Shown here piece after piece: positions 20,761 through 61,698 of a stretch of DNA of 64,000 nucleotides. The stretch is from Perkinsela sp. CCAP 1560/9 (taxonomy: Eukaryota; Protista; Euglenozoa: Kinetoplastea): NCBI GenBank assembly GCA_965644495.1, contig CBFFSA010000013.1:358001-422000 (forward strand), read 5' to 3'. The notes under the pieces were generated by a model. The model had not been told where the DNA came from. It worked only from the letters and a program-made list of their open reading frames with translations, and searched no databases. The number at the start of each line of letters is the position of its first letter. Position 1 is the stretch's first letter. Made by a program: the position numbers and the translations under genes.

Positions 20761-20838
20761 AACGATAAAGATACAGTTTTAACGATAAAGATACAGTTTC
20801 TGTACCTTGTTGTTTCTGTACCTTGTTGTACCTTGTTG
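20761..20838 (+). other. Stacked spliced-leader-like exon copies
   Basis: Partial SL, then full aacgataaagatacagtttctgtaccttgttg (20781-20812), then tttctgtaccttgttg, then taccttgttg. It shares the euglenozoan SL core ACAGTTTCTGTAC..TTG. Confidence 0.85.
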
Positions 20839-23800
20839 ATTTATTTCCTAATCCTCTCCAAATGGTCGCGTTGACTCGCTCCGTAGCCATACGCTCGGGC
20901 CAACACATTGAAACTCCACCCTTACCTTTGTGCCACGGACATAAGAACCGCCCCCTGAAGGATTCCTTGCTTCCAAACCCCCACGACGCAAAAACTTCCC
21001 CGACGGATTCACCGGTAAAAATTTCTGATCTCCCTCGCGAAGATTCCACTAATCTTTGCAAACACATATGTAAAAACAAACTGGCATGCAAACACAGTTG
21101 TTGCAAGCGCACAGTGGAGGCGCCTATTGACAGTTCCCATCACATACATACAGTTTGCATACGTACTGGTGACGACCGTCTTCTTCATACTAAAGTACAC
21201 TAGCGTTATTGTAGGGAACGTCCTCGCCCTAGGATGCACGGTGACTTGGACAGTCGCATGCCTGGTCGGGAGCATTATATTGAAAACGCGTAGTCTGCTT
21301 TCACTTCGTTCCAAGGACGTTGCCGCACCAGGTCATGACCCCCCTGTGACGCTAAACCTCTGCACACGTAAACGAAATTGTGTCTCACCGCAACCTGCTC
21401 CCCCCACCTCGTTCTCTATTACCTTGAGCAATCCTCCTAGCTTTGAGTTATCGATTCCTGTATCCCCAACCGACGAGACTGACTCAACTCAGGAGACCGT
21501 ACTATGCGACCCTCACCGCGCTGTGACTCTAGCTGGTCCTGCAACGGAAGCTGTCGTGCCACCTCTTCATTCTGCGGGGGACCCGCCCCTCCCGGAACGT
21601 CGGTACTGTCCGGCAGACGGATGTGCGTGGTCCGCACAATCCCACGGCGGCAAATGGCAAGCTTTTTATAATCATGTGGCCTCCCGACACGCCGAAGGCA
21701 TACCGCTAGAGTGATGGGCACGTGAAGGCAGATTTCTTTGCACGGTGTGCAACAAACATTTTGTGTTGACCAAGAAGGAAGCCCATTCAATTCAATGCTA
21801 CGGGGCGGACCCACCTCCCACACAGCCATCACCAACAACAGATCTTCCTGACCCCGCGTACCCTTCAGAGACGCCAGAGGAATCTAGCTTACCGCCCACT
21901 ATAGACCCACCATGTTTCCCTAGCCTAAGAGCCGTCTGTACAACACCTATGACCACGTCCAAAGACGTTCCTTTCCGATGCCGACGCCAGTGGGCTTCGG
22001 TCCTAACAGCCACCGTCGCAACAGCCGAGAGGGAGAACACCGTCGCTGCATGGACACGACTAGCGATGCTTCCGAAATGTGTCCTTCCAGCCCCGCATAG
22101 AAGAGGACGAAAGGGAAATAGCTCGTACGCCTCCCACGTGCGGAAATGTCTGGATCGCTGGGAAGCACACGAATATTCAGCCCTGTGGAAAGAAGCTGTA
22201 CTTGAACACCAGAAGAAGAGGAAGCAAGGATCCGGAGCAGGTACACTACTGGATGAGGAAAAGAAAGCGATTCGCTCCGAACTACTGGTCCGTCAAGGAG
22301 AAGTTTCTCGAGGAATAGCTGCACTCACTTCGGCGCCAATGGCACCCGACAATGAGGAGACATATAACAAACTAGTCACCAAGCACCCGAGCCGGCTGTT
22401 CGGTCCACTACGCCAAAGCGCACCGTCCTCCAACGAAATCATTTCCTTGACTGTCAATGAGGATGATGTACGAAAGGCGATCCAAAGCTTTAACAGGGGC
22501 TCCTCAGGTGGAACCATGGCGCTACGAGCGGAACACATACAAGCGGCATTATTCGCTGGAACTGACACGGATGTTCATCCCCTCGAGAGTCTCACAAAGC
22601 TTGCCAATCACCTACTCGCCGGTAAGGCTCCAGTTGAAGCACAACAATATTACGCAGGGGCTCGATTGTGTGCATTGCAGAAAGGGCAAAATGATGTAAG
22701 ACCTATCGCAGCAGGGGAAACGTTGCGCCGCATGGTCAGCAAGGCTGCCTGCTCTGTTGTAAAGTCCAAAGCTAGCACACTTTTCCAAGGACGTCAATAT
22801 GGTGTGGCAACGGCATCTGGCTCCGAAAGGGTTATCCACCTCTGCCGCCAAGTGGTGGAGTCCACAAAGAATGACCCAGAATTTGTCTTATGCAAGGTGG
22901 ACCTTCGTAACGCATTCAATACGGTTTCCAGGGCGGCGTTCATATCCCTATCAGAAAAGCACTTCCCCGAGTTGACTCCTTGGATAAATTGGTGCTACGC
23001 CACCGATAGCGCACTCACATATGGTTCTCAAACAGTTGCCTCCACCGAAGGAGTTCAACAGGGGGACCCTTTAGGGCCCCTCCTTTTCTCCATGGTTCTG
23101 CGAGAGATTACTGAACTGATCGAGAATGAAGTGCCCAGCGGACTCCTCTTGCACCTTTGGTATCTCGATGACGGTGTTTTAGCCGGAAAATCCGACAGCG
23201 TACGGAGGGCGTTGGATGCTATAGCATGTGCGGGACCTCAGTGGGGGCTCCATCTTAATGCGAGTAAATGCGAGATAATATCTCATCCGGTATCCTCGCG
23301 TTGCACGGACTCATTCACTACCATCCCAGCCAGAATGAAAAATCACGAAGGAAACTTTAGCATCTTGGGTAGCCCAGTAGGGTCAGAAGAGTTCTGTATT
23401 GAATACCTACGTGAGTTTGCGATCGAACCTGCGGAAGCAACTCTAAAGGCGATAGGCATACTAGAAGACCCACAGGTAGCCCTCGCGCTAATTCGCTACT
23501 GCTCTGGCTTTTGCCAATTAGTCTACTCCCTCCGCACAACGCCACCAAAATACATGGTAGACCTCTGTCAGAGGCTTGATAACGCCGTGCTCCGCGCTAC
23601 GGAGCTTATACTCTGTCCTCTAGACGCCCCGGCACTAGCACAAATCCAACGCGACAAGAGACATGGTGGTTTTGGCCTAAGATCCTCCGTTATACATTCA
23701 TCTGCAGCTTATGTCTCTCCAGCAGCCTTTGCGGGTTCTCAAGATGACTGGGCACCGTCAGAGACGAAATGGTTTTCCGAGGCAGTGGAGCGTGTTAACC

Positions 23801-24903
23801 GCCAGGCGGGAAAGACTTTGGTGGATTCGACAACCGGCAAAATACAGGAGGCACTAATCCACAAAGATTATAACGCATCAACCAACCCTCTCAATGCACA
23901 CCATGATCACAGCCTAGATGCCGGGATGAATGAAAAGCTGATTATCCCGCGACAGAAACACCTTTGTCGCGAGATAGGCGACCGGGAATTTTCTTCAGCA
24001 TATGAGGCAGCAGACTGCAACACACGCGCACGTTTGATTTCGCAAACTGGGAGAGGGGCCGCGAGTTGGGCATTCGTTATTCCCTCCAAGGAGAGAGGAT
24101 ACTCTTACACTCCTACTGAGTTTCGCGCCTTGTCCCGCTGGTGGTTGGGAGCAGACATTTACCCCGGAACGCGGCCCTGTCCTATGGGGAGCTGTCAGCA
24201 ACCGTTGGGACCAAAAGGCGACCATGCCGTGTCCTGTAAGTGTGGACATGGCATCATGACGCGCCACAACGCGATGGCGTGTCAATTTGTCGATTTCTGC
24301 AGTAAGGCGCACCTCGCCCCCCAACGGGAGGTAAGTCTTGGCAATCGCGGTCCCGCTGGAGCGCCCACGAGGCCTGGTGATGTCGTTTTGCCCAGCATTG
24401 GCTTAGGCAAGTCTCTGGTGCTTGATTTCGCCGTTACCCACGTTCAGCAACCCAAATACGCGGACCTCGTCCGTAACGCTAACGGGGTGACGGCGGGATC
24501 ATTCGCCGAGAGCTATGCCACAAGCCATAAGCAGGTGCAGCGACGGGACGCCGAGACTGCTGGGCACGACTTCGCGGCCATGGTCGTAGGCTCCTATGGC
24601 TCGTGGTCCGACAGCGCCCTCGCTGTGCTTAAGAAGGTTGGAGCGTGGCGCTCTGCTACGTCCCAAGGGACGATGGACAGGGGAAAGGCGACGGCAAATC
24701 TCATCCGTGACTTGAATGTCACTTTAATGCGAGCTCAGGCTCGTATGATGGTGGCGCGGATGGCAGAAGATGACCCGGATCCACCTCTGCTCCTGAATTA
24801 GAGGGTGATGCACTTTTTTTTCTTTTTCTTTTCTTTGGCTTGGTTTCGTCAAATAGAGTGATTTGTTGTAGATTGATTTATAGAGATAAATTTGAAAAAA
24901 AAA
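20781..24903 (+). mobile_element. Full-length SL-capped family-A CRE-like element, inactivated
   Basis: ATG at 20862 (MVALTRS); zinc fingers; RT (RPIAAGE, DLRNAFN, GVQQGDPLGP, WYLDD); RLE; stop at 24801. One early frameshift and a TGG>TGA stop at 21712 where paralogs have WW. Confidence 0.92.
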
Positions 24904-25709
24904 TCGCGGGAAAAAGAGCCGCAGCATGTAAGGGTGATATGTCCGAGCAAGCGTCAATGTTTTTTCTTCTCCAGGACATGAACGTTACGCTCATGCGGTC
25001 TCAGGCACGAATGCTTGTAAGACGCATGGCAGACGTGGATATCCATGCCAGGCTCGCTTTCCTGCACGAGGCACCCTCTGACACCACACCAAATCGTGCC
25101 AGCGGCGGTCCGGCAGGAGCGATCGAGCCTACAGTGCCTATTCTCACGCCTCGCCTTCGTGAGTGAGGTACCCCAATGTGAGATAGGTAGGGATTCGGTC
25201 TGACAGTCCTATTTCAGCACGAAGACGCCATGGTATCCAGGACGGGTGCTGGTCGGGTCGACAGAGTCTATGCTCACGCCTAGCCCGCGAGGGCTAGGTA
25301 CCCCAAGTGAGGTAGTACACGGGTAGTGAATCTCCTCCCCGTTGGCCAGCATCTTGTTTCGCGACCGTGTCGCTGTCGACACAGGCCCGCGCCTGCGCCC
25401 TCCCATATAACAAGGGAAGGGTTCACAAGTCAGGCCGTGGAGAGGTCGAAAGACCCGGTCCGGAACGCGCGAATGGATTGGGAATGGATTGCTTGTTTTA
25501 ATTTTTACTGTTTTTCTTGTTTGTAGTATGTACTTAGGGGAGACTAAATTGCTAGTTTTGGGCTGAGAAAAAAGATACACCTGTGGAAAGAAAAAAGAAT
25601 TGCTAATTTGATTGCTTGTTTTCAACTCGTATACCCCCCAATGGACATACTTGGTTCGTCTACTGGGTCAAAATATAGAGGCAATGCCGCGATTCATAAA
25701 AAAAAAAAA
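24904..25709 (+). mobile_element. 5'-truncated family-A stub with 3' RNA module and poly(A)
   Basis: MNVTLMRSQARMLVRRM; module at 25244-25476; A-tail. Confidence 0.85.
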
Positions 25710-25931
25710 CTGATACCGTACATTCATAGAAAGTTAGAACTCATACTCTTCCCCCCAATTAATTGCAAAAAAATAAATAAATTAAAAGCAAGAAAAAAAT
25801 TCAAAAAAGTGTACACCCTCAAAAATTGTCTAGTCATTAGAGTAAAAAAAAAAAAAACAAACTTACTGACAGGTCTGCAGGCAGGTGAAATCGAATAAAA
25901 AAAAAAAAAAAAGGGAGGAATCACCCTCCCT

Positions 25932-26758
25932 TTCTTTGCCGAGCACTACGCACAGACCAAAGCGAGACAGCGACAGGAAGCAACCGAGGCCGGGTTTCTT
26001 TTCACAGCCATGGTTGTGGAATCATTTGGCTCCTGGAGTGAGAGTGCCTTAGCGCTCCTCCGCGACATCGGAACGCAACGAGCGAACGCGTCGAAAGAAC
26101 TCATGTCTCGCAGCCAAGCACGAAATGAACTCCTTACGGAGCTGAACGTTGCGTTAATGAGATCACAAGCCAGAATGATGGTTTCGCGTATCTGCGTGCC
26201 AGATCCAACGGATCCAATGGTAGCGACATAGGCCTATACCTACGGACCCGCTTCTATCCTCTCTTGCATCCTCTGGTCCGGATGTTGGTCGTGTCGACAG
26301 AGTCTATACTCACGCCTAGCCCGCGAGGGCTAGGTACCCGAAGTGAGGTAGTACACGGGCAGTGAATCTCCTCCCCGTCGGCCAGCATCCTGTTTCGCGA
26401 CCGTGTCGCTGTCGACACAGGCCCGCGCCTGCGCCCTCCCGTATAGCAAGGGAAGGGTTCACAAGTCAGGCCGTGGAGAGGTCGAAAGACCCGGTCCGGA
26501 ACGCGCGAATGGATTGGATCTGGATTGCTTGTTTTTATTTTTACTGTGTCTTGTTTGTAGTATATACTTAGGGGTGATTAAATTGCTAGTTTTGGGCTGA
26601 GAAAAAGTAAAGGTACATCTGTGGAAAGAAAAAGAATTGCTAATTTGATTGCTTGTTTACAAATCATATACCCCTCCCCAATGGACCTACTTGGTTCGTC
26701 TACTGGGTAAAAATATAGAGGCAATGCCGCGTTTTATACTTCTCCCCCCTAAAAAAAA
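25932..26758 (+). mobile_element. 5'-truncated family-A stub
   Basis: Coding part nearly identical to 31272-31570; module at 26280-26512; A-tail. Confidence 0.88.
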
Positions 26759-27057
26759 TCTTAATACAAAAAGTGATCTTAATACAAAAAGTGATCTTAA
26801 CACCAAAGAAGCTAACAGGCACTTGTTGCTTTCTTTTAGTTATTCTTATTTCTTCATGGGAGTGGTCACCCGCCCCAAGGCAAAGGAAACAGGAGCAGCT
26901 CCTGTGATTTTGCCTCTCGCCCCCGTTCGCCGCAGGAAAAAGACAGCGCCTGTTGCCCCAAAGTCTCCTCCAACCATCGCTGTCGTGGGGACGCATCCGA
27001 CCGCTTCGCCCTCAAAGAGGTCTCCACCCCCCGCACCATCGACGCCATCGCCACCTC
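26759..27057 (+). mobile_element. 5' end of a family-B CRE-like element that continues at 40381
   Basis: An 18-bp repeat (atcttaatacaaaaagtg x2.5) is followed by ATG MGVVTRPKAKETG. Positions 26882-27057 are duplicated at 40381-40556. Confidence 0.85.
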
Positions 27058-30000
27058 TTTAACGATAAAGATACAGTTTCTGTACCTTGTTGACTATATT
27101 TTATCTCATATTTTTCCCGGGTACACGGCTACCTTAATATCCGGAGACCACCACTTTGAAGAGTCAACTCGAATGGAAGAAGATTCGTTCCTGCAAGAAG
27201 AAGCAGCGCACCAACCAGGATCCTGGGACCAAATTGCGGGGAATGCTCACCTAATCAAACAGCCCACCTCATATAACGAATTGCTATACACCACACCGAT
27301 CCCGGAAAGCATCCCTGAAGACTGGTGTCAGAAAGCCACCTTAATTTCGACTGACCAGCAAACACCAGACACTGGACACAGAAATGACGGCGACGAGGAA
27401 ACGACCCACGCACGCGTTCTCATCAGCACAAATCACAGCTCACGAACAACACAACCCACTAATGTTTCAGTTTCGAAAAAATTTTCCCGTCGCAAGTCAC
27501 CGGCCACATCTCCGTGTGCTAAAGGACAAATTCGGGGCATTGGGAAATCTCAGAAGACGCGACAGAAAACCAACACAAGAACAATGGAAGCGATCGACCA
27601 TAGTATCCCACATAGTCCATACGATAGCGACCTTCCGGAGACTATATCACAAACAACGACCCTCGAAACCCCAACGCCGACAGGTGACGAAACCACTACG
27701 AACATACCGAGCTCTCAAGAAGGCCCTAGGCAACGGGAGTGTCCCGCAGAAAACTGTAATTGGAAAGCACACGCCCACGGAGGGCAATGGCAATCGTATT
27801 ATAGCCATGTGGCTTATCGACACGGAGGGAGCATTCCCAGCATCTGGTGGGATAACGAAGGACGCTTCTTGTGCAACGAATGTGGACGGCATTATGCGTC
27901 CAGCAAGAAGACATCACACGAGAATCAATGCAAAGGACAATCTGTGCAGCCAGCTTCTTCCCCGCACCCATCAGAACCCCTAGGGGAAACTTTTTACGAC
28001 GTTCACGGCACCAACGATATACCATCATTGGACGAAATATGCACGACTTCAATCAGCACCTGTAAGGACGTCCCGCATCGATGCCGATATTTGTGGACCA
28101 AAATTTTGACTACAGCCCTTTCCTCCGCGGTGCACGAAAATTCAGTAAGGGCGTGGACGCTCCTGGCAATACTCCCGAAATGCGTTCTACCAGCCCCTTA
28201 CCGCGGCGGTCGCAAAGCTCACACGTCATATTCCTCGTATATTCTCAAGCGAATGGAGCTTTGGATTGAAGGAAAATACGCAACCTTATGGTCCGAAGCG
28301 ATTAGGGACAACGAAAGGAAACGTTCGAAGCAACAGAGCAATGAGAATGTGGAGGATAAATCTCAGATACGATCAGAACTTTTGGTCCGTCAGGGAGAAT
28401 ATTCGAGAGGCATGGCCGCCCTTACTGCAGCGCCACTTGCGCCGTACAATGAGGAAACTCTGCAAAAGCTACAAAAAAAGCACCCCAGTCCTCACGCAAA
28501 CCCTATATCCAGTCCCCTACCTCCTTTGCAAGTGGATGTTTTGCAGCTCGACGAATCTGAGGTCAAAAAGGCAGTCAATAGTTTCCACCGTGGGTCCTCT
28601 GCTGGAACCATGGGGCTTAGACCTGAACACCTCCAAACAGCACTTCAGGAGCACGTTGACCACAACATGGACCCTCTCATGACACTCACTTCCTTTGTGA
28701 ATCACCTGCTAGCTGGCAAAGCTCCAGACGAAGTACACCCCTTCTTTGCTGGTGCACGGCTCTGCGCTCTCGAAAAGGGGAATGATGACGTGCGACCTAT
28801 AGCTGCAGGAGAAACCCTTCGACGTCTCGTAAGCAAGGCAGTGTGTCTCTCAATTAAACAAAAAGCAGGTTCCTTTTTCGGACGCAAACAGTATGGGGTT
28901 GCAGCGGCTGCTGGAGCAGAACGGGTAATCCACCTTTGCCGCCGGCTAATGCGGAACAACATGGAGAACGACAACATCACCTTTTGCAAAGTGGACCTCA
29001 GGAACGCCTTCAACAACGTAAGTAGGCCGGTTTTTATTTTCCTGACACGCGAACATTTTCCTGAAATATCGCCATGGGTCGAATGGTGCTACGGAAACCA
29101 CAGCTGTCTCACGTTCGGTGACGATTTCATTCCTTCGGCGGAAGGCGTGCAACAAGGGGATCCGTTAGGCCCTCTTCTCTTCTCTTTGGCCCTAGCAGAG
29201 GTAACGAAGGAAATAGCGTCCCGCTCTCACTTACGAACACAGTTGTGGTATCTCGACGACGGCATACTTGTAGGCGAACCGAGTGAAGTCCGGAAGGCCC
29301 TAGACATCCTCGATGAGATAGGGCCGAAGTGCGGGCTTTTCCTAAACCTCACCAAGTGTGAGATTATTACTCCTCCAGCTTCAGCCCACACCTCCGTTTT
29401 CTTCCCCGATATCCCGAGCGAGAAAATCCGCTACGATGGGAACTTCGACACCCTTGGAAGCCCCATTGGCTCTGCGGAGCACTGTATGGAATTCCTAGAG
29501 ACACACGCGATTGAGCCAGCCCGGGATACATTGGAAGCTACCGCAGTGTTAGAAGACCCGCAAGTGGCCCTCGCGCTAATACGGCAATGTGCAGGATTTT
29601 GTCAAATGGTATATGCACTACGCACAACCCCACCACAACCCCACCACAAGCCGTCAAGGAATTATGCCAACGGCTTGATTCATATTTGCTCAACGCTGTG
29701 GAACATGCAATTTCCCACCTGGACCTCTCCGCTCGCGACCAAATCCAACGACCGAAACGCCACGGGGGGTTCGGACTCCGCTCATCATTGCTCCACCAGT
29801 CAGCTGCATATGTTTCCTCGGTTAAACTGAACCAATATTCGCAAATTTATGAATTTTCAAAATTTCACGTCCCTTATATGCGCTGAGGCCATGAGGGAAT
29901 CCAGCCATTGACGCAATTTAATCACCGTTTTTTCGCTTACCTCCGTTTCCGCCACTGAAGACACATGGCGCCCACCCCTACAGTACAAAACGATGTACAT

Positions 30001-32057
30001 GAGAGTCTGTTTAGCGCTTCGCTGGCTCTTGCTGGGCAACAGCGGCCCCATAGCTCCATACCTCCCTTTACAATGCTTGGTGCAGACCCATTTATTCCCG
30101 ACTAATGCCATGGTGTGCGGAGCTCTGTGATTTTTCTTGTAGCAAATAACTTTCTGCGCCACTAGAGAGTGGTTTTTCATCCAGTCCAGACATTGATTCT
30201 CACTCCAGGAAGAACTTCTTCTGATCGTAAGTTTCGAACGGCACGAGAACCCACCGCACCCAGTGCATGTCATTAAAAGGTGAGAAGAGCACTAAACAAG
30301 TACTAATGGATTCAAAAAACTCAATGCTTATATAAAATTAATGTGCAGAACCATGATTCAGAATAAAAGAAAGGAGCGATAAAACGTTCAGGTAAAAATT
30401 TTGCCAGATTGAGAAAAGTGCGAATATTGGTTCAGTTTCACCGTTTCCTCTATCACTTTTTCTGCTAACATGGATGGCTGGGAACCAACCGAAGCAGAAG
30501 GATTCTCTGATTCCGTCCGGGACATAAACGAAAAAGTCGGAGCTGATCTAGTTGACACGATCACTGGACGCATTGCCAAACCCAATTCTCTAGCTGAACA
30601 GCATGAGGGACGAGGCACCCGGTCCCGCCTAGCTAAACGAAAATATACCACATCTCTCAACAACACTCTCCCCTCCGACTCCACCGAACAGGAAACCATT
30701 ATACCACGACAGAGGCATCTCAGCCATGCAATATCGGAAAATGAATTCCAGGCTGCGTACATGAAAACAGACGCAAGGACGAGGGCACGATGGGTTTCTC
30801 AATCAGGGAGGGGGGCCGGAAACTGGGCTTTTGTAACACCGTCCAAGAGCAGAAGCTACGCTTTTACCCACACAGAGTTTCGGACTCTGACACGCTGGTG
30901 GCTCGGGATGAATATCTTGCCGGAGGATCAACCTTGCCCAGCTGACGGCTGCACCCTTCCCTTACTTAAAAATGGAGAGCACGCTTTGCTCTGTAAGAAT
31001 GGACACGGTATAATCTCACGACATAATGCCGTAGCGCAACAATTTACGTCCTTTTGCAGCAAAGCTTTCCTTCAACCACAGAGAGAGAAGAGTTTGGGAA
31101 ATCGAGGGCCAGGAGGAGCTCTCACAAGACCAGCGGACGTCTTCCTACCAACTGCATCCTTAGCCAAGGGCACTGTAGCGCAAGGCATGGTTCTAGATTT
31201 TGCGGTCACCCACGCACAGCAACTAAAGTATTTGGACTCAGTCCATAATGCTAGCTGGGTGGCCCCAGGGTCTTTTGCCGAGCACTATGCACAGACCAAA
31301 GCGAGACAGCGACAGGAAGCAACCGAGGCCGGGTTTCTTTTCACAGCCATGGTTGTGGAATCATTTGGCTCCTGGAGTGAGAGTGCCTTAGCGCTCCTCC
31401 GCGACATCGGAACGCAACGAGCGAACGCGTCGAAAGAACTCATGTCTCGCAGCCAAGCACGAAATGAACTCCTTACGAAGCTGAACGTTGCGTTAATGAG
31501 ATCACAAGCCAGAATGATGGTTTCGCGTATCTGCGTGCCAGATCCAACGGATCCAATGGTAGCGACATAGGCCTATACCTACGGACCCGCTTCTATCCTC
31601 TCTTGCATCCTCTGGTCCGGATGTTGGTCGGGTCGACAGAGTCTATACTCACGCCTAGCCCGCGAGGGCTAGGTACCCGAAGTGAGGTAGTACACGGGCA
31701 GTGAATCTCCTCCCCGTCGGCCAGCATCCTGTTTCGCGACCGTGTCGCTGTCGACACAGGCCCGCGCCTGCGCCCTCCCGTATAGCAAGGGAAGGGTTCA
31801 CAAGTCAGGCCGTGGAGAGGTCGAAAGACCCGGTCCGGAACGCGCGAATGGATTGGGCCTGGATTGCTTGTTTTTATTGTTATTGTTTTTATTGTTCTTA
31901 TACTTACGGGAGATCGAATTGCTAGTTTTGGGCTCCAAAATATGAAATTGCTAATTTGATTGCTTGTTTTAAAATCATATACCCCCCCCCGATGGACCTA
32001 CAGGGTTCAAGTATTGGGTAAAAATATAGAGGCAATGCCGCGTTTCAAAAAAAAAAA
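27058..32057 (+). mobile_element. Full-length SL-capped family-A CRE-like element, disrupted
   Basis: SL at 27061-27092; ORF 27173..31570 with C2H2-like fingers, WYLDD and RLE. An 11-bp tandem duplication near 29630 shifts the frame, and a Merlin-like insert interrupts it. Module at 31619-31851; poly(A). Confidence 0.93.
29820..30442 (-). mobile_element. Merlin/IS1016-like DNA transposon, internally deleted
   Basis: 23-bp TIR ggttaaactgaaccaatattcgc / gcgaatattggttcagtttcacc with GG...CC ends and an 8-bp TSD gtttcctc. Cys-rich ORF 29857..30273 lacks a DDE domain. Removing the insert restores YVSSITF. Confidence 0.8.
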
Positions 32058-35000
32058 GGTTAACGATAAAGATACAGTTTCTGTACCTTGTTGAATTATT
32101 TTCCTTATTTCATCTTTTTCCAGGTACGCGGTTCCTTCCATGACCAGCCAAAAGTCTTTCCAAGAAGAAAAAAAAAGGCACACACTTGGTTCCTGGGATC
32201 AATTCGAGGGTAACAAACATTTAATATCCGGCCCCAGCACCTACAACGAACTTGCCTACACCACCGAGATCCCTGCGCACGTTCCATCCGAATGGACCAG
32301 ACGAACGGAAGCAGCATGTGCCACTTTGGTTGTCGAGGGGGGGACGCCCGACATGGGAATCGAATTAGGGGAGTGTGAAGAGTCAAACCACGCCAGCGTT
32401 CAGCGACAACCTCCCGATAGTTCCTCAGTTCGCCGTTTTCCAAAGACACCCAGAAAAACGAATAGGATGTCACAGGACTCCATCGTTCTCCGAGGGGAGC
32501 TAAAAGGATACAGAAAAACGCCAGTTGGCCGACGAGCCCCCGAGAAACATAACTCTAATGGTAGAAAACCGGCACCTGATAAGGAAGTTCTACCTGCAAT
32601 GGATCTTGATGAAGCATGTTTGACACAGCCATCCGCAACTCAAACACAATCAGCCGCCGCCGAACCACCGAATCACTCTCCCTCTCACGATGAAGCTGTA
32701 CCTTATTTCCAATCATCACAACAACGAAGAGCCTGCCCAGCACCCGGCTGCAATTGGGACGCGCCATCACACGGTGGAAGTTGGCAAGCATACTTCAACC
32801 ACATTGCCTCGCAACATGGAGACAGTGTTCCGGATTCATGGTGGAGAGAAGAAGGCCGTTTCCGATGCCACACATGCAATCGCCACTACGACTTAGGGAA
32901 AGAACACTCACACTCGAAGAGCTGTAAAATCGCATCTCACATCCCTTGCCAAGAGGAGGTGAACCCACAAGCTGTAAACCCGACACAAGAGAACGACGTC
33001 ATCGAATATCTTCCAACATTGGCCGAGATTAGTGCTCTCCCTCGCGCAACTTGCAAGGATATTCCTCACCGGTGTCGGCTACAGTGGGCACGTGTCCTCA
33101 CGACTACCCTTAAGGAGGCCCTGGGTAGCACTGGTGTAGGAGGATGGGCTAAGCTCGCAATGCTCCCAAAGTGCACCCTAGCAGCACCCCGAAGGGGCGG
33201 GCGCAAAGGGCACATGTCTTACGCGTCACATGTAAGTAACTGCCTCGAACGCTGGGAGATGGGAGACGTCTCCGGCCTCTGGAAAAAACTAATTGTTGAA
33301 CAAGAGAAAAGGTCGCCTCGCAAAGAACCTGACGAGCATTCACTTGAGGAAGAGATGCGAAAGGCCAACCTACGCGCCGAGCTTTTAGTTCGACAAGGCG
33401 AATTTTCACGGGGATTGGCAGCACTTACTGCGGATCCTCTCGCACCAGATAACGACGACACTCTTTCCCAGCTCCTGCTTAAACACCCCACCCGTCACAC
33501 CACTGAGCCGCCCGTAGATATGCCTCCCCTAGGCCCGGAGGTGCTTACACTCGGAGAAACGGATGTACGACACGCACTAAAAGGTTTTCACCGAGGATCA
33601 TCCAGCGGGACTGTGGGGCTGCGGGCAGAACACCTTCAAGCTGCACTACTCGTCAATGAAGATCTCGACGTCACACCGCTCTCTGCACTAACAGCTCTCA
33701 CGAATCATCTCCTCGAAGGCAAAGCCCCGTTGGACGTGCAAGAAGCGTTTGCTGGCGCGCGGCTGTGTGCACTCAGAAAAGGGGAGAGTGGTGTACGACC
33801 GATAGCTGCCGGGGAGACATTACGCCGTTTGACTAGCAAAGCAGCATGTCTAGCAGTACGAACGAAGGCACGTGAACTTTTCGCCGGAACACAATTTGGG
33901 GTAGCCACACCTGCTGGAGCTGAGCGTCTAATTCACCTTTGTCGAAAAGCAATGCACGAAAATTCTGAGAACTCCGATTTCGTCCTCTGTAAAGTAGATC
34001 TGAAGAACGCGTTCAACAATGTTTCTCGTGCCGCCTTCATTGCGTTGACACGACATTACTTTCCAGAGCTTTCACGCTGGGTGGAGTGGTGCTACGGTAC
34101 TACAAGTGCTCTGACCTATGGCCAAATCCGAATTTCATCCGAGGAAGGCGCGCAACAAGGCGACCCCTTAGGGCCACTACTTTTTTCCCTCGTCATGCTC
34201 CAAGTTTCGGAAGAAATTAAAACTTCGTCCGGAGGACTTCAGCTCCACATGTGGTACCTTGACGACGGAGTCTTGGCAGGTCCATCATACGAAGTACAAA
34301 ATGCTCTGCGCGTGATAGCGGACGTGGGGCCTAAGTGTTTCTCAACCCGGAGAAGTGCGAAATTATCACCCACCCTGCTTCAGCAATGCAGACAGACATT
34401 TTTTATCAAATCCCTCGCGAACAAAAGAATTTCCAAGGCAATTTTTCTATTCTTGGGAGCCCCATAGGTTCTTCCGAATTTTGTCGTACCTACCTAGAGG
34501 AACATGCAATCGACCCCGCTGTAGACACTCTCCTGGCAATACAAAGCCTAGAAGACCCACAAGTTGCCCTTTCGCTACTTCGTCAATGTGCCGGATTTTG
34601 CCAAATGACGTATGCACTGCGTACAACACCTTTTCGTAAACTCATGGACTTATGCACTCGCCTTGACTCAGCAACAATGAAAACTCTCGAATGGATTTTC
34701 TGTCCTTTGGATGATGTTTCCAGGTGTCAGGCACAGCGACTGAAGAAACATGGGGGATTTGGCATTCGTTCATCCGAGCTACATGCCTCCGGGGCTTATA
34801 TTTCTTCAGTGACATTCGGCGCCGAGCAAGACTCCTGGGAACCGCAAGAAGCAGAAGGTTTCGAAGATGCAGTTCATGACTTCAACAACGCACTAGGCAT
34901 CACGTTACTTGACCGGACCACAGGATCTATCACCAACAGCCAACAAGATAATCGCCAAACGAGTAACGACATCGAGGCGGATTTACCGGAAGGAACCTAT

Positions 35001-36451
35001 GCCTCGGAGAAATGCACAGTACCACGGCAAAAACAGTTAAGCCACATTATTTCAGAACACGAATTCGGGCAAGCATTCTACAACGCAGACATTAAGACCC
35101 GAACTCGCTGGATTTCACAGTCTGGCAAGGGAGCTGGGGACTGGGCATTTTCCACTCCATCCAAAGACCTTGGTTTTGCATTCACATCAGCTGAATTCCG
35201 CGCACTGGTAAGGTGGTGGCTCGGAGCACAACTTGTACCCAGCGTCCAACCATGTCCCATAGAAAAATGTAAAATGTCTATCGGACTCGATGGGGACCAC
35301 GCTCTAGTGTGCAAATCTGGACATGGCATCATGGCACGACATAACTCTCTTTGTCTACAGTTTGCGCAAGAGTGTAGTAAGGCGCAGCTGGCTCCTCAGA
35401 GGGAAAAGACGCTAGGAAATCATGGTCCGGGAGGCGGCTTGACACGACCAGGTGACGTTTACTTGCCAAACTATGACCTTGGCACAGCTCTCGTCCTTGA
35501 CTTCGCAGTTACACATGTCCAGCAAAACAAATATACGGACTTAGTCCGAACTGCTACATGGGTAAAGGGACCTTGGCACAGCTCTCGTCCTTGACTTCGC
35601 AGTTACACATGTCCAGCAAAACAAATATACGGACTTAGTCCGAACTGCTACATGGGTAAAGGGGTCATTCGCCGAGCGCTACGCCTCGGAACATAAAATA
35701 TCGGAGAGAGCAGAAGCTGTCGCTGCTGGTCACCGTTTTGAAGCGATGGTCGTAGAATCCTTTGGATCCTGGTCCAAAAGTGCCCTGACCATCATAAAAA
35801 GCGTCGGGAAACACCAAGCTTCAACCTCTAATGGGACTTTGAGCCATGCACAGGCCACAGCACAACTCATAAGGGGTATGAACATAGCCCTCATGCGTTC
35901 ACAGGCACGGATGTTGGTCCGACGTCTCCCGGATGAAGATCCCACTGGCCAACTCGTCACACATGACGACCGGCTGGATTCATTCCGAACTGGTCGTTTG
36001 CGCCCATGAACATCTGGTCGGGATGCTGGTCGCGTCGACAGAGTCTATGCTCACGCCTAGTCCGTCAGGGCTAGGTACCCCAAGTGAGGTAGTACACGGG
36101 TAGTGAATCTCCTCCCCGTCGACCAGCATCCTGTTTCGCGACCGTGTCGCTGTCGACACAGGCCCGCGCCTGCGCCCTCCCATATAGCAAGGGAAGGGTT
36201 CACAAGTCAGGCCGTGGAGAGGTCGAAAGACCCGGTCCGGAACGCGCGAATGGATTGGGCCTGGATTGCTTGTTTTTATTGTTATTGTTTTTATTGTTCT
36301 TATACTTACGGGAGATCGAATTGCTAGTTTTGGGCTCCAAAATATGAAATTGCTAGTTTAATTGCTTGTTTTAAAATCATATACCCCCCCGATGGACCTA
36401 CAGGGTTCAAGTATTGGGTAAAAATATAGAGGCAATGCCGCAAAAAAAAAA
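32058..36451 (+). mobile_element. Full-length SL-capped family-A CRE-like element, disrupted
   Basis: SL at 32062-32093; ORF from 32140 with WYLDD. Frameshift near 34335 and a 94-bp tandem duplication (35475-35568 / 35569-35662). Module at 36021-36253; poly(A). Confidence 0.93.
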
Positions 36452-39400
36452 GCCATTCCCTACAATTCGTCCGCGGCAGGGTCGCTTTGAACACCGGTCT
36501 GCGCAACGAACTCGTGACCCTCTACGAAACTCACTCCGGAAACAGCTTTGACCTAGACTGTGCCATTGGACAACTTCCCGCCGGTATCTCTGTGAGCGCA
36601 GCGCTTCAATGCGCTTCCCAATCTAGCACGATCCCTGGCCACAGGACCGCAGTCTTTAGCCATCCCAAGGGACGCACTCTTATCGTCATCCCCAAGACCA
36701 CACCCCCCGACCGGTATCCCTTCGCCCTTTGCAACCAAATCGGGATCGACACGGAATTTGCCTCTGCCTGGAGAGAGATTCCTTCCCCGGACGGGCCGCT
36801 TTGGTGTTACGCCCCAGCCGAAGGCCTGATTGCCAAATCTGGATGGAGTAAAACGCAGATAGATCTCGGTCTTATGCGAGGGGGGGTGGAGTGGAACCCG
36901 GGCCCTCGAAACCCTTGTCTACACTTGTTCAGATTTAAAATTTCCCCGAAGACACAGAACACTTTGCTCCCCCAAGCGCTACGCAATCAAATTTCCTTTT
37001 TTCCCTCCCCGTCGCTCTCCTCCGAAACGGGATGGAGCCGAATGTGCATGAAAACTGAACTTTTTCGGGGCGGGGTGGAACAAAACCCAGGACCCAACAC
37101 CTCGTACTCGGCTAAACGATCACTTCTCCTTCAAGCTACCGACCGTTCAGCAACCCCCTTTTCCAGCTGGCATCAAGACGAAACCCGGGAATGTCCTGCC
37201 GAAGGCTGTTCCTGGAAAACGACTTCTCACAGCGGCCATTGGAAGGCCTTTTTCAACCACGTAGCGACTCGACACGGTGAAACTATCCCGGAAGATTGGT
37301 GGACCTTGCAGGGACGCTTCCTTTGCACCTCATGCGGACGAAACTATGATTTGGGAAAAAAAGACTCCCACCCAGGTACGTGCAGAGTAATCGATCTCGA
37401 CTCCCGCCCTACCATACATCCCCCTGGTACACCATCGGACACTTCCAGTTTCCCCGACGAAAATGCGGTTCCCATCCCGACGCAGGAAATAGAAGCCCCG
37501 GCCGTGCTGCCTTCCCTCGCTGAAATATGCTCTATCCCCATCAACACCTCCAAAAATGTCCCAGCTCGATGCCGCCAGCAATGGGCAGTTGTTCTCACCG
37601 GGGCTCTGTACGAGGTTGTGAATGACAACACAACCACTTCCTGGACGCTACTTGCAATGCTGCCAAAATGCGTGCTCCCCGCTCCCTATCGAGGAGGGCG
37701 GAAAGGGTTTACATCCTACACTAACTTCGTCAAACAGCGTTTACAACTTTGGCAAGCTCGTGATTTTTCCACCCCCTGGAGAGATGCTGTCAATGGCCTC
37801 CAAAAGAAGCGCTCGATGCGCACCCGGGAAGGAATCGACGAAGAGACCCGGTCAGCCGTCCGTGCGGAACTCCTGGCACGACAAGGCGAATTTTCCAGAG
37901 CCATGACTGCGCTAACTGCATCACCTTTAGCACCAAATTCGCCCGAAACACTGTCCAAGCTGCAGGACAAGCACCCCAGTCGTCTCCCGCCGCCTACTTT
38001 CACCCCAACTTTCACTCCAGAGAAATCACATAGCCCCCCCCTACAGCTCTCAGAAAAAGAAGTCGAGACCGCGATTAAAGCTTTTCACCGAGGTTCGTCG
38101 GGAGGTGCCATGGGACTTCGACCAGAACATCTCCGGGAGGCCCTTCTGGTGAATGCCGACTCTAGAGCTAAACCCTTAGCAGCCATCACTGAACTCGTAA
38201 ATCTTCTAGCTGGGAAGGCAAATCCCGATTGTCAACAGTTTTTCGCAGGTGCCCGCCTGTGCGCGCTCCAGAAAGGCGCACACGGCGTTCGCCCCATAGC
38301 CGTCGGGGAAACGATCCGCCGCCTCGCCAGCAAAGGGGCCTGTGCCGCGGTAAAATCTAAAGCACGCTCTCTTTTCCAGGGACAACAGTTCGGAGTAGCC
38401 ACCGCAGCGGGCTCGGAAAGAATCATACACCTCTGTAGGCGAACAATGGCTGCACACGCCGACGATCCCGACTTTGCTCTAGCGAAGATAGACTTATCCA
38501 ACGCCTTCAACAACGTATCCAGAACTGCCTTTCTTTCATTGACACTCCAACACTTTCCTGACCTGTACAATTGGGTCGAATGGTGCTATGAAACCGAAAG
38601 CTATCTTACATACGGATCGCAGACCATCCCTTCCGCTGAAGGGGTGCAACAGGGGGGCCCCCTTGGACCTCTTTTATTCTCTCTGGTTATACAATACTTA
38701 GCGACATCAGTCATTAATGAGCTCCCTGAAGAACTCCCCCTCCACGTCTGGTACCTCGACGACGGGGTACTGGCCGGCAAAGCTTCGCTGATCCGGCGTG
38801 CCCTCGACGTTATAGCGCACGAAGGAAAACAGTTTGGTCTCTTTCTAAACTCAACGAAATGCGAAATAGTGTTGAGCTCCTCCTCCGCGAGCTCCGCCAC
38901 TTTATTTCCGGACATCCCCAGTGCAAGGATCCACCTCGACGGCAACTTTGACATCCTTGGGAGCCCAGTAGGGTCAGAGCCGCATTGTTATGAGTTCCTC
39001 TCCAAGCAAGCGCTGGAACCCGCACAAGCCTCCCTGAGGGCTATAAAGAAAGTCACGGACCCCCAAGTCGCCCTATCCCTGATACGGCAATGTTCCGGTT
39101 TCTGCCAGCTAGTCTTCTCCCTTCGTACTACACCCCCACTATTCCTTTCAGAGCTTTGTTCGCGACTCGACGCCTCGGTCCTCCAAGCTCTCGAAGACGC
39201 CATATGCACGCTAAACCCTTGTAGTCGAGCTCAAGCTCAGCGTAAAAAACGACACGGAGGTTTTGGGTTACACTCAACTTCCCTCCATGCATGCGCCGCT
39301 TACGTTACCTCCGTAGCCTTCGCCGCGCAACAAGATCACTGGGGCCCGGCAGAAGCAGACGGCTTCTGCGAGGCTGCGTCACGCGTTAACTTCTTAGCGG

Positions 39401-40380
39401 GTTCTCCCATCATCAACTCCGTCACGGGCCAGCTCCTACAGCCCTCGGACCCCGACCTTCCCTCTATTGGCCCCAAGTCGCCCAGACAACATGAACTCAC
39501 CAAAGCTATCGCGGCCCATGAATTTCACCTCGCATACAACGTCGCTGACGCACACAAACGAGTAAGATGGATTTCGCAGTCCGGAGAGGGTGCATCAAAC
39601 TGGCTGTTTGCCTTACCGTCGAAGGAGATGGGGTACGCCTTTACGCCCACGGAGTTTCGTGCACTGGCCCGCTGGTGGTTGGGGGCTGACGTGTACCACG
39701 AATCCCGGCCATGCCCCATGGACAAATGTCCTCAGCCCCTGGGAACAGATGGGAGTCACTCCCTTGTCTGCAAGAGCGGTTACGGGTTAATTTCCCGTCA
39801 CAACGCGCTTGCAGAACATTTCTGCGACGTGTGCAGCAAGGCACACCTCGCCCCACAGCGAGAAAAGAGCCTGGAGAACTACAGCCCGGGTGGCGGCCTT
39901 ACCAGGCCCGCGGACATTTTCCTGCCGAACTTTGGCTTGGCGACCTCTCCGGTGTTAGACTTCTGTGTGACACACGTTCAGCAGACCAATTATACGGACA
40001 TGGTCCGAGGTGCTAACGTGGGAAAAGCAGGATGTTTCGCCGAGAGGTACGCCTCCGAGCACAAAAGTTCGGAGCGTCTGGAGGCGGAGTCCGCGGGGCA
40101 CAAATTCACCGCAATGGCGGTGGAGTCCTTCGGATCCTGGTCCGACAGTGCCATGGGCATCTTGCGCCAGGTGGCTCTGCAGCATCCCAGGGAACCCTCT
40201 CTCGCTTCAAAGCTTCCTTTCGGCTCCTGACCGAAATGAACGTCACGTTGATGAGGGCCCAGGCGGGCATGCTAGTTAATGCTAGTTAATCGCATGCCCG
40301 CAGAAGATTTGTATCCGCCATTACGCACGTAATGGCGAGGAAAGTAGGGAAAGTTCGAAGTTGAAAGTTGTAAAAAAAAA
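36452..40380 (+). mobile_element. Family-A CRE-like element with two 2A-like peptides; 5'-truncated, frameshift near the C-terminus
   Basis: The frame is open from the junction; GGVEWNPGP and GGVEQNPGP precede the zinc fingers, RT (WYLDD) and RLE; short UTR and poly(A). Confidence 0.92.
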
Positions 40381-43080
40381 AAAGGAAACAGGAGTAGCTC
40401 CTGTGATTTTGCCTCTCGCCCCCGTTCGCCGCAGGAAAAAGACAGCGCCTGTTGCCCCAAAGTCTCCTCCAACCATCGCTGTCGTGGGGACGCATCCGAC
40501 CGCTTCGCCCTCAAAGAGGTCTCCACCCCCCGCACCATCGACGCCATCGCCACCTCGGGCACCCTCACCTCCGCCGTCTGCGCCGACGCCTCCGCCATCT
40601 CCGCGATCTTCGTTGCCTCCTACACCGCTCGCATTTCGAGGGCCGACGACCCTTCCTCCGACTGAAGCGCGTTCGCCGTCGCCACCTCCGCCCCTCACAT
40701 TGCGGGAGCCGTCGTCCCCCCAAACGAATACACCGCGATCGGACCCGGTGTTACCACCACCATTGCCGTCTCCGACACCACTACCCTTGCCGCTTTCTAC
40801 TTTTTTCGGCACCACCATGACAAGACTTCCCCCTCTGCGGTCCCTTAAGAAAGCACGCAACAAGGGAGTAGGTCTAACCGAGAAGGCCGACCATGTAATA
40901 GGATCACGTAAGTCTAAAGTAAGTGAAAAATCGTTAAAGGTCAAAATTAAAAGCACTTACAACGGAGAGCCTTCCGCTAAGTGTGAGGCCCTAAAAAATG
41001 CAGGATGCAGCGAGAGCTCTGGCAACCAACGCGTTACGAGAAGTGGCGCTGAAAATTCACAAGGAGTTAAGATTAGTGAGTCGCAATCAGGGATAAGCAA
41101 GGTCAAGCCAAAGAAAACAGCCAGAATCAGAGTAATCACTCACACGGACCCCGCGTTATCTTCGACTTGGGCTGACCACAAAGTCTATGAGAATCTTTCA
41201 GTCGAACGCCGCAATCCCAACATTATCAAATTAAAAGGAATGAAGTATGGTCAGATAGGTCGAGATCCAGCTGATTTTGAGGTTTCCCAGCCAGATGCAT
41301 TGTCCGAGGCAGATTCCGAGTTGATATCTCTGAAAAGTGATGGTGGCATTGATATTGACGACGCGGAATGCATCCAGGATTCTGATATCATGTCATTGGA
41401 CGAAAGAGATGAACAGAGCACGTTCGCCAAAGCTCCTGATCGAGTCTACAAAATTATGTCGGAATGGGGAAAAGGCTCGACGTGCGAGGTTCAGTGGAGT
41501 TTTCGACGCAACGATACAAAGTTCCATTCCATTGGCGAAGTTGTTAAGAGAACGTCACGGCGAGGAAAAGTGAAGATCCAAATCTCGTATAAACCGGAAG
41601 GCGGCCATGAAGGACCATCAGGATTACTTTATCTTCCACAGTCAGAAAAAATTCGAATCTGGTCGCTTCGTGCCTTGAAAGAAAACAAAGTTTCTGTGTC
41701 AACTTATCAGCCCAAAGATGAAGTGGAAGAAACATGTTTTGAAAATGCCCAGAATCTGGACCTGGATCCGCTTCCGCAGTTGGCCCAGATTGATCCATCT
41801 TTCGCTGTCCATGTCGTGGCAATTTTCCGCTCCATCGTACGCGAGTATCCTAAGGCACAAATGGAATCCGAGAAAACAACCATATGGCATAAGCTTCTAA
41901 ATGCACCACGTGACTCACTGGCGACGGTACGTCAAAAGCTCCAGAGAAGCCAAAGCAGCGTAAGAACGCTCAAGCGAAAAGATTTGTTGCCGCAAGAAGA
42001 AACCCTCAGTGAGGAGCAACGTCTGGAGTTGGACGTAGACCGCCGTTCCATCAGAAATGCATTGCAAACTGCAAAAGCTGGGAATTTAGGCAAAGCTACA
42101 CGTATTCTAGACAACGTGTATCGCGATTCCTCAGTACAGCCAGAAGAGAAAGCGTCGAAACTGAAAGAGCTCCACCCGACAGGTCCCCCACCTCAGTTCC
42201 TAGATGACGATTTTCCGCGAACTGCCATTGTTGAGCCGTCCGAACTGCGCCTTGCCACGGAGAAACTGTCGAAGGGAGCTTCACCTGGGCCGACAGGTTT
42301 TAGTGAGAGTATGATGCGACTTTTGATAGACGACGAAGAAACGTGTTTGGCACTTTGTCATATGTTTCGAGACATCATAAATGGTGATGTGACAGAAAGT
42401 ATCCGGGAACGCTTAACCCGATGTCGAATTATAGCTCTTGCTAAATCGAACAATGGCATCCGACCCGTAGCCATGGGGCGCAAAATTCTTAAAATATGCG
42501 GATCAATCCTCTTGGAAAGACATGGGAGCACATTGAAACCTCTTTTTCAACCACTTCAGCGAGGTATCCTACAGCAGAATGCATGTGAATCCATAGTGCA
42601 CGAGCTTATGAAGGAGTATGAAGAAGGTTACACGATGCTAACGGTGGACTTTAAGAACGCTTACAACACTCCACATCGCCCCGCAATAGCAAATGCGCTC
42701 ATTCAGAAACCGATCTTCAAGCACTTTATGAGGCTCTTCTACTTGGAATACGGAAAACCGTCTGAACTTCTCTTCTTCGCCAACAATTCTCTTCACACAG
42801 TCATAGAAAGTTCGTCCGGGGTTCGTCAAGGTTCCGCGCTCTCCTCCCTGTATTTCTGCGTCTTGCTGCAAGGACCGCTATTAAAAGTTGCCAATCTGTA
42901 CCCGGAAGTTCATGTCAGGGCCTATCAAGATGACGTCACCATGAGCTCTAAAAATCCCACTTCGCTTGAAGCAGCCTTTCTACACTTAAGAGAACTCACA
43001 CAGGATATCAACCTTCAGATAAACTTCAACAAATGTGAATGGTTCCAGAAGACAAGTGAGCTAACAGGCAATTCTGCTTT
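40381..43080 (+). mobile_element. Family-B CRE-like element body (Pro-rich N-terminus, RT with AYQDD), truncated at a YR element end
   Basis: ORF 40361..43102 carries SPGPTG, RPVAMG, DFKNAYN, GVRQGSALS and AYQDD. Confidence 0.92.
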
Positions 43081-59849: not shown

Positions 59850-61698
59850 AAGATGTTGTTTTCGAAGGATTGAATTACGCCATTTGTGAAAGCGCATATG
59901 ATACGTATAGTGGATAAAAATAAGATATTGAGCGTTGAAAATCAAAAAAAAAAAAAAAAAACGAAGACGAGGGAGACGTAAACTTCATGCAATCAATAAC
60001 CAAGCAGAACGGACATGTGAGCGATTTTGATGTGTATGAGGAATGAGTGAGTGAGGAGACGAGATGACGAGGGGGGGGCTCTCAGATAGTAGGCAATCTG
60101 GGGTCTCTTCTTCTTGCCGTCACTAGCGTTTGGGTGATTTGAAGACTGGCGAGTGGGTGGTCCCCGCCGGGGAACTACCCATTCGCAAGAGAGAGAAAGT
60201 TTGAATATTGTTTTGTGGACGTCCATATATTTTTTGTTATCATTATAGTCAGGATAGGAAAGTTGAAAGACATGTAGTTATTTAGTTTTATTTACTTGAT
60301 GAATATTATTTACTTAGGACAATTCTTTATATATTTTGTACAAAGATTTTATGATGAGCAATTCTAAAACGTTCCAAAGAAGCGAATTATCATCTACTCT
60401 CGACAAACAATTATGTAAACCCGTACTTATTTCATCAAACACTCAAGATGAGATTAGCTATTGGACTGCCTAATGCTTCAAGTACAATCTCTTGCCCAGG
60501 CTGTGGGATCAGTGAATCGCCGATTGGTATAATTCCTCATGTCGCCGGATGCTCGAAATGTGCCGGAATGAATTGCACAAGAAAGCACTCACACATTGTG
60601 AGATACCTATCAAATCTGTGCGGGAAAGCAGGCCTACCATGTGCCGTGGAACCGCGTCTGTATTCCTCGTTTTTCTGCACAAAGTGCAAGTGCTCCATAT
60701 CACCAGCAGCAGCAGAGAGGCACCCATGCCGAGCTCGTCGTATACGATCTGGCCCAGATCTGGCGATAATGTGGCCAGATATTGGAGAAGTTCTATATGA
60801 TGTCACAGTTGTCCACACACTATGCAGCAGTTACCAGAAACAGACCAGCAAAGCCCTGTTAGAGAGTGCCGTAGAAAGAAAACATCGGAAATACGTTGTA
60901 GAGAAGGGATTAGAACCAGAGTATTTTCGTTGCGTCGCTTTAACGGATTGTGGAATGTTACATGAAGATACCAAGGTCTTGATCAAAGCCCTTGCAAAAC
61001 GAGCGGATTCTGACCCAAAAGTTATACGTGAAGCTTGTCAATTGGAAAATGAAAAGTTTGCGGCTTACACTATCGTATCGCAATTGCGGAACCACATGCA
61101 GGGTGAAAAATGGCTAGGTGGCATAAGCCTTTGAAGCCAAGTAATCTTCTAGTCTCCAAAGTCAAGTCTATCTCGTATTATTCAACATGGGCACAAATAC
61201 AGGACCCAACAACAACAACATGGGCACAGATACAGGACACTAAACTCTGAGGGCTATTAAAAGGACAAAATTCCTTTTTGCTTAAGAAAGAAAGGTATTT
61301 TCTTTAGAAAAGGATTTTCTTTAGAAATGGATTTTTATATGATGAAAATCCATATGAAAAGTGGGTAGGCTTCCGGTGGGCCTAGGGGGGTGCACACCCA
61401 AAAAGAAAAAAAAATCTTCGTATAAATATACATCATCATCATACGATAATGAGAACTTGTGAAAGTAATTGAAGCATTTATATGTAGAATAAGAAGTATG
61501 CATGCTGATCGAAAAAATTATTGACCACCTATTCCACAGAACTGGGCGGGTCACGAAGACTTTTTCAAGCGTAAAAAAAAAAATTGACTTGGTTTGGGTT
61601 TGCTCGGTTTGGTTGGGCTTTTATTAGTTTACGATTTGAAATTTAAAAAAAAAAAACTCAATACTATTCCCCCCCCCCCAAAAAAAAAAAAACGTTTT

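Follow-up and report, generated by a model that had tools for sequence, protein, structure and literature searches.

A 64,000-nucleotide stretch of the Perkinsela sp. CCAP 1560/9 genome (contig CBFFSA010000013.1, positions 358,001 to 422,000 of the forward strand; hereafter the window) carries several retrotransposons that lack long terminal repeats (non-LTR retrotransposons) and that begin with most of the host spliced leader (SL), joined directly to element sequence. We propose that these elements are, with high probability, DNA copies of retrotransposon mRNAs that had been SL trans-spliced and polyadenylated. Trans-splicing followed by copying into DNA had been put forward in an original prediction made from the window alone, and it is supported by the evidence: the leader remnants (relics) end exactly at the exon boundary, the leader heads elements of multiple families, copies of the SL RNA itself keep the intron, and relics are identical on elements that have otherwise diverged.

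The 32-nucleotide sequence (32-mer) on which the prediction was built is present exactly at 20781-20812, 27061-27092 and 32062-32093, the heads of elements E1, E2 and E3, and with one mismatch at 61699-61730; judging from 100 shuffles, none would be expected by chance. As anticipated, GT follows none of the four window copies (the next bases are TTTC, ACTA, AATT and CCTT). The 32-mer is indeed SL exon sequence, namely the last 32 nucleotides of a 38-nucleotide SL that reads AACTTT plus the 32-mer in its genuine gene. The variable bases ending in TT that were thought to precede the 32-mer are thus not flanking sequence but part of the SL. With the leader numbered from A1 to G38, relics in the window measure 34-36 nucleotides, starting at C3 or T4 in E2, at T5 in E3 and at about T4 in E1 and the copy at 61699. 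Across the 21-Mb assembly, the last 23 nucleotides of the leader occur in 452 exact copies and in 583 copies when up to three mismatches are permitted, so that 78% of the relic 23-mers are exact. A literature search for the leader sequence did not find it. In another strain, Perkinsela sp. CCAP 1560/4, a 38-bp mini-exon, one intact SL gene and more than 500 SL-like fragments have been reported (PMC5601477), of which 24 adjoin retrotransposon sequences, together with stand-alone SL RNA retro-copies (PMC5601477, Suppl. notes 1.2-1.3).

Locating the SL RNA genes by an exon followed by GT had been suggested as a check. GT follows 94 of the leader 23-mers, most of them from an element family whose untranslated region (UTR) starts with GTAC, and the intron start GTATGAG follows the leader at only seven places in the assembly. 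Two of the seven form a 297-bp tandem pair whose upstream sequences are identical, about 700 bp from a 5S rRNA gene and apart from the elements. This pair is the genuine SL RNA gene; at its locus Rfam reported the 5S rRNA only, with no match to an SL RNA family. The other five places have unrelated flanks and are retro-copies of unspliced SL RNA. Four well-preserved examples (G000 C2:801603, C20:10944, C25:23935 and C49:34386) run from C3 through about 62 nucleotides of intron and then into oligo(A), while the fifth stops after 12 intron bases. These intron-keeping copies offer an internal control against which to judge the spliced relics.

Tabulation of junctions, likewise suggested beforehand, covered the window and about 100 other places in the assembly and yielded 69 that are distinct. 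All 65 spliced-type junctions end at G38 and are joined directly to many different UTRs, and their upstream flanks are unrelated. The leader heads long interspersed elements (LINEs) of the restriction-like endonuclease (RLE) type, a LINE of the apurinic/apyrimidinic endonuclease (APE) type and elements resembling short interspersed elements (SINE-like). Its presence on the APE-type LINE and the SINE-like elements indicates that it is a property of the cell's mRNAs rather than a consequence of the target that one element chooses. Poly(A) sites vary by up to ~35 nucleotides between copies that share one tail, as expected for processed mRNAs. The relics of E1, E2 and E3 are identical at 32 of 32 positions, whereas their proteins are 46-55% identical and the UTRs of E2 and E3 ~74% identical; the relic was therefore re-acquired from the host rather than inherited. 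Furthermore, the SL|UTR junction is conserved across many families, with the UTR start AATTATTT found at 18 of the 65 spliced-type junctions, and near-identical short elements bear relics of differing length. Near-identical copies of two short elements retain only the last 6-9 nucleotides of the leader, some with repeated (A)CTTGTTG units.

At the RNA level, reverse transcription PCR (RT-PCR) in another Perkinsela strain found that the transcript of an L1Tc-like element carries the SL (PMC5601477, Suppl. 1.2). At the RPL3 locus, a 2015 read run gave an RNA-like contig over the gene only; the CT-rich 84 nucleotides upstream were masked and the first 30 letters of the contig were hidden. An RPL3 mRNA contig from a relative starts with that relative's own leader variant. 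Of the contigs from distant relatives, only one begins within a leader, in that same variant; it is an element contig of environmental origin, possibly DNA, with poly(A) at its other end.

The commonest relic start is C3 (26 of the 69 junctions), two nucleotides short of the capped end of the leader, with a T just upstream in 20 of 24 cases. Some relics seem to start at A1, but as these follow poly(A) their start is ambiguous. The SL RNA retro-copies start at C3 as well, which points to the capped end of the leader itself as the cause of the stop. The predicted stalling of reverse transcriptase (RT) at the cap4 nucleotides is compatible with these starts but no more than that: the stop at C3 fits trouble in the cap4 region, while a strict block at m3U, the nucleotide at the position of T4 in trypanosome cap4, is unsupported.

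Stacked relics appear to record more than one addition of the leader. On E1 the partial relics TTTCTGTACCTTGTTG and TACCTTGTTG begin right after the leader dinucleotides AG22 and TG28, and the same stacks occur in other families. Genome-wide, a second relic follows TG28 in about 33 copies from many families, AG22 in nine copies from at least six families and AG16 in two copies. In another Perkinsela strain the splice acceptor is reported to be AG in only 27% and TG in 26% of cases (PMC5601477). If this published usage holds here, the TG28, AG22 and AG16 stacks would all be products of re-splicing. Compared with the stacks known from dinoflagellates, the AG22 and AG16 forms fit, and the commonest form, after TG28, fits only with TG as the acceptor. 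The region upstream of RPL3 contains a long CT tract only, AG being absent from the 150 nucleotides before the start codon, which fits the use of non-AG acceptors.

Because the pyrimidine-rich 3′ half of the relic ends in TG, a reported acceptor about as common as AG, it is conceivable that the relic acts as a portable 3′ splice site, with trans-splicing of any transcribed leader-headed copy exactly where relic and UTR meet, so that a new capped leader takes the place of the old relic. We advance this idea tentatively and regard it as somewhat doubtful. If true, it would make the retrotransposons independent of flanking splice signals and would explain the conserved SL|UTR junction, the missing AG-preceded source copies and the TG28, AG22 and AG16 by-products.

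The window also holds a concatemer of three elements. A 176-bp duplication lies on both sides of E2, E3 and E4 (Table 1), which therefore stand head to tail inside one target duplication within a host element, F; together they span 13.3 kb. On the simplest reading, this is one insertion event during which RT, on reaching an mRNA's 5′ end, moved over to the poly(A) tail of the following mRNA, and the two G at the E2/E3 joint may be untemplated bases added at the template jump. The RT of R2 is known to perform end-to-end template jumping in vitro. Across the genome, an A8+ tract is found within 30 nucleotides of 22 of 40 full-length heads. The element at 36452 had been considered a continuation of F on the basis of a frame count; the duplication copy at 40381-40556 ruled this out. 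SL fragments from the 5′ part of the leader alone, such as the one upstream of E1, precede full relics at other genomic places too, and we read them as template-switch debris. At G000 C1:3218598 the reverse complement of leader nucleotides 17-32 lies directly upstream of a relic and looks like a snap-back or strand-switch product. A tandem array at G000 C1:2477645-2492923 has a period of 5,093 bp and a unit boundary without poly(A); here the same 34-nucleotide sequence flanks each relic on both sides, and its upstream copy is preceded by AG.

Table 1. Leader-headed elements and associated features of the window.
Feature	Position	Strand	Details
Partial leader fragment (SL nucleotides 8-25) plus one T	20762..20780	+	Lies after the poly(A) of a SINE-like element upstream and before E1; read directly
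E1 head	20781..20838	+	32-mer 20781-20812; partial relic TTTCTGTACCTTGTTG 20813-20828; third relic TACCTTGTTG 20829-20838
Element E1, RLE-type LINE, ~4.9 kb	20781..25709	+	RT 22681-23292; zinc knuckle and restriction-like endonuclease 24178-24456; poly(A) 25698-25709
5′ part of host element F	26820..27057	+	Leader remnant of 9 nucleotides 26820-26828; ATG 26856; first copy of the 176-bp target duplication 26882-27057
Element E2, RLE LINE, 5.0 kb	27057..32057	+	Relic 27057/27058-27092 (C3/T4 to G38); RT 28775-29416; poly(A) 32047-32057
Two extra G	32058..32059	+	Between E2 poly(A) and E3 relic; read directly
Element E3, RLE LINE, 4.4 kb	32060..36451	+	Relic 32060-32093 (T5 to G38); RT 33775-34314; poly(A) 36442-36451
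Element E4, RLE LINE without leader (5′ truncated)	36452..40380	+	Open reading frame 36487-40230; poly(A) 40369-40380; third concatemer member
Second copy of the 176-bp target duplication	40381..40556	+	99.4% identical to 26882-27057 (blastn); element F resumes from here
SINE-like non-coding element, leader-headed (1 mismatch)	61695..62443	+	Follows the poly(A) of another copy; own poly(A) 62432-62443

A cycle that could generate these structures would begin with transcription of an element, presumably in a polycistronic unit; such units are found in all kinetoplastids. The DNA anatomy suggests that the element RNA would then gain the 38-nucleotide leader by trans-splicing and a poly(A) tail, after which the element's R2-like RT/endonuclease protein would copy the mRNA at a nicked target. 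The complementary DNA (cDNA) would usually end at C3, often with one extra base, giving the relic of 34-36 nucleotides; the capped end would probably cause the observed starts. At the leader end RT would often jump to the poly(A) of another mRNA, which may be how the observed head-to-tail concatemers are built. Finally, copies that are transcribed again could be re-spliced inside or at the end of their relic, resulting in stacked partial relics such as those on E1.

Three alternative origins of the leader heads were weighed. The first is a chimaeric cDNA: the element RNA would not be trans-spliced, and RT would switch from its 5′ end to a free SL exon intermediate or to some other RNA's leader. 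Template switching clearly happens often, as the concatemer, the 5′-only fragments, the one inverted fragment and the SL RNA retro-copies attest. Nevertheless, the leader side of the junction never departs from G38, its UTR side falls at a homologous, conserved position in families that have diverged, and jumps onto the abundant SL RNA should bring in the intron, which is seen only in the stand-alone SL RNA copies. Moreover, unspliced kinetoplastid RNA lacks a defined 5′ end to jump from, and the L1Tc-like Perkinsela transcript was found by RT-PCR to bear the leader (PMC5601477, Suppl. 1.2). We judge it improbable that the heads arose in this way.

A head inherited vertically as a functional part of the element, for example an initiator or promoter mimicking the SL gene, appears very improbable. 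It would fit the conservation of the SL|UTR junction and of the AATTATTT UTR start across families (18 of 65), as well as the failure to find AG-preceded source copies, and there is a precedent in the Pr77 heads of trypanosomatid LINEs, which are reported to recruit SL gene transcription factors (PMC8190864). However, it is at odds with an exact match to the host leader despite ~50% protein divergence and ~74% UTR identity, and with the 78% of relic 23-mers that are exact. The absence of A1-A2 from the copies means that such a head would erode with each cycle; in addition, relic length differs between near-identical copies, and stacked relics show a new leader added to an old one.

Least tenable, and extremely improbable, is site-specific insertion into SL RNA genes or fragments in the manner of SLACS, CRE and CZAR, with the 5′ leader being target DNA: although the elements encode an R2-like RT and restriction-like endonuclease, as the CRE clade does, although some other families start at leader nucleotide 11/12, the CRE/SLACS cleavage position, and although the Perkinsela arrangement was called reminiscent of SLACS in 2017 (PMC5601477, Suppl. 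1.3), what lies upstream of relics bears no relation to the region upstream of the SL gene, the relic stops at the exon boundary and not at nucleotide 11, poly(A) tails are never followed by intron or the remainder of the leader in the copies examined, the two assembled SL genes are intact and uninterrupted, and the leader is also found on the APE-type LINE and the SINE-like elements. The original prediction had likewise held that these elements relate to the SL otherwise than by SL gene targeting, and the dispersed, unrelated flanks and the lack of SL intron after poly(A) agree with it; copies that sit in SL gene arrays and have intron following their poly(A), which it had named as contrary evidence, were looked for and not found among the copies examined.

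Several points weigh against the proposal that the elements are copies of trans-spliced mRNA, or against parts of it. For this organism the case rests on DNA anatomy, with RNA evidence published for another Perkinsela strain only. The reading frames of all three window copies, E1 to E3, are broken, and current activity of these copies is thus not demonstrated. RT slippage could also account for the TG28 stacks, as could a variant SL gene missing from the assembly; within the assembly, a variant gene with a doubled TACCTTGTTG end was present at none of the seven places where the exon is followed by GTATGAG. Source copies in which AG immediately precedes the conserved UTR start were sought, with one chance match as the result against 47 TG-joined copies, and recreating the same SL|UTR junction leans on TG-acceptor usage from a different strain. 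T4 is copied faithfully, which weakens a strict cap4-block model. Lastly, some families always start at leader A11/T12. None of 17 cases from these families lies next to poly(A), and their flanks look like coding sequence. A CRE-like reading of these families was rejected, as their upstream flanks are neither leader nucleotides 1-10 nor element tails.

The elements were predicted to be RLE retrotransposons, and their proteins confirm this. E1, E2, E3 and E4 all contain a Pfam RVT_1 domain (E 1e-14 to 1e-18), and the RT domain sits in one long open reading frame, as in RLE-type (R2-group) non-LTR retrotransposons. The solved proteins nearest to the element RT by sequence are those of R2 (PDB 8gh6, 9dou, 9nl2/3). 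C-terminal to the RT of E1, a zinc knuckle C..C..H..C is followed by a PGD...LDF...K motif, and in this part of the protein E82, D99 and D114 are invariant in 18 relatives. A structure model of the C-terminal 238 amino acids of E1 (predicted local distance difference test score, pLDDT, 86.7) gave significant fold matches to R2 proteins only, which took all of the top seven places (E 1e-5 to 2e-2, template modelling (TM) score ~0.5). Searching PDB by sequence with the C-terminal domain alone gave no match, so that the R2 endonuclease is seen by fold comparison only. The zinc knuckle, the PD-(D/E)XK-like motif, the invariant acidic residues and the R2-only fold matches show the RLE label to be correct. 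The marks of target-primed reverse transcription are also present: poly(A) tails, variable 5′ truncation and the 176-bp duplication around the concatemer. No named CRE or SLACS sequence is among the 120 best relatives, the closest named ones being from the sponge Ephydatia.

E1, E2 and E3 had been described as three full-length members of a single family, family A. Both ends are kept in all three; their frames are nonetheless broken, and more than one family is represented, with proteins only 46-55% identical. The frame of E1 is split in three at the N-terminal end, E2 contains ~640 non-coding bases at 29830-30470, and in E3 the frame shifts near 34400 and the C-terminus is shortened. The copy at 61699, predicted to be non-autonomous, is a non-coding element of ~745 nucleotides with a poly(A) end.

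Dinoflagellates are an established case of relics on retrogenes (PMC5585692, PMC6050394). There, too, a DNA-encoded 5′ relic of the leader (DinoSL) marks a retroposed trans-spliced mRNA, in what are termed 'recycled processed cDNAs', and stacked truncated relics record repeated cycles of splicing and copying (PMC5585692, PMC6050394). The two systems differ in that host genes are copied in dinoflagellates and the relic is truncated at one AG, whereas in Perkinsela retrotransposons are copied and stacks follow both TG and AG. The kinetoplastid elements CRE1/CRE2, SLACS and CZAR are also LINEs with an RT and a restriction-like endonuclease that are associated with the leader sequence, but they reside inside SL RNA genes between leader nucleotides 11 and 12. 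The Perkinsela elements, unlike these, have the spliced exon minus 2-4 nucleotides as their own 5′ end, occupy dispersed sites and lack the intron. R2 is specific for the 28S ribosomal DNA and is processed from a co-transcript, whereas the Perkinsela elements have a leader as their head and poly(A) as their tail and lie either dispersed or in stacks. L1Tc/ingi elements with Pr77 are likewise kinetoplastid LINE/SINE families with a common 5′ module; Pr77 is reported to be an internal promoter giving unspliced transcripts (PMC1874656, PMC8190864), whereas the shared module in Perkinsela is the host leader. The only kinetoplastid precedent that we found in the literature is in the supplementary notes of the 2017 Perkinsela paper (PMC5601477). 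That study of Perkinsela sp. CCAP 1560/4 gave a SLACS-like reading and called the link 'worthy of further investigation'; leader-headed element copies, concatemers and stacked relics are not described in it (PMC5601477).

Copying of trans-spliced mRNA would answer a question left by the Perkinsela genome paper, namely why leader fragments litter the genome beside retrotransposons, and would carry the leader relic, as a signature of retroposition, over from host genes of dinoflagellates to the mobile elements of a kinetoplastid. Relics could then serve as a natural 5′-end tag that marks full-length mRNA templates and the RT stop point on a hypermodified cap, and that also reveals acceptor dinucleotides and in vivo jumps from the capped 5′ end to another poly(A), by which concatemers are built. 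For annotation, hundreds of 'SL gene fragments' in such genomes would be element heads rather than decayed SL genes.

A 3′ UTR module of ~440 nucleotides is 85-95% identical between elements whose proteins are ~50% identical, and it occurs in the window at 18578-18990, 20228-20458, 25243-25706, 25935-26734, 31619-32057 and 36013-36451; this likeness suggests that modules may have been exchanged between families. The N-termini of the E2 and E3 reading frames (27173-27532 and 32140-32499) contain a WDQF...YNEL.YTT motif with weak similarity to LsmAD (ataxin-2; E ~0.1). Among relatives, one has a precomputed LsmAD match and two have an MLLE/PABC domain, hints of a possible link to the biology of poly(A)-binding protein.

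A paralogue of the E1-E2-E3 stack lies at G000 C2:1477504-1488608, with almost equal spacing (6107 and 4997 bp) and the same flank upstream of E1; it is a segmental duplication of the whole stack. Right after the E1 tail, at 25710-25915, come 3′ fragments of other elements, four or five in a row, all very short and with a poly(A) end. The RPL3 protein of this assembly is 100% identical to one in the transcriptome of the amoeba Paramoeba atlantica, Paramoeba being a host of the kinetoplastid Perkinsela, and the published Perkinsela genome has hundreds of genes for leucine-rich proteins (PMC5601477) besides its 38-bp mini-exon and SL-like fragments. The window thus very probably derives from a Perkinsela-like endosymbiont, in all likelihood that of P. 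atlantica. The window also contains a different element class: an open reading frame at 57435-59849 has weak matches to RT and RNase H of the LTR-retroelement type.

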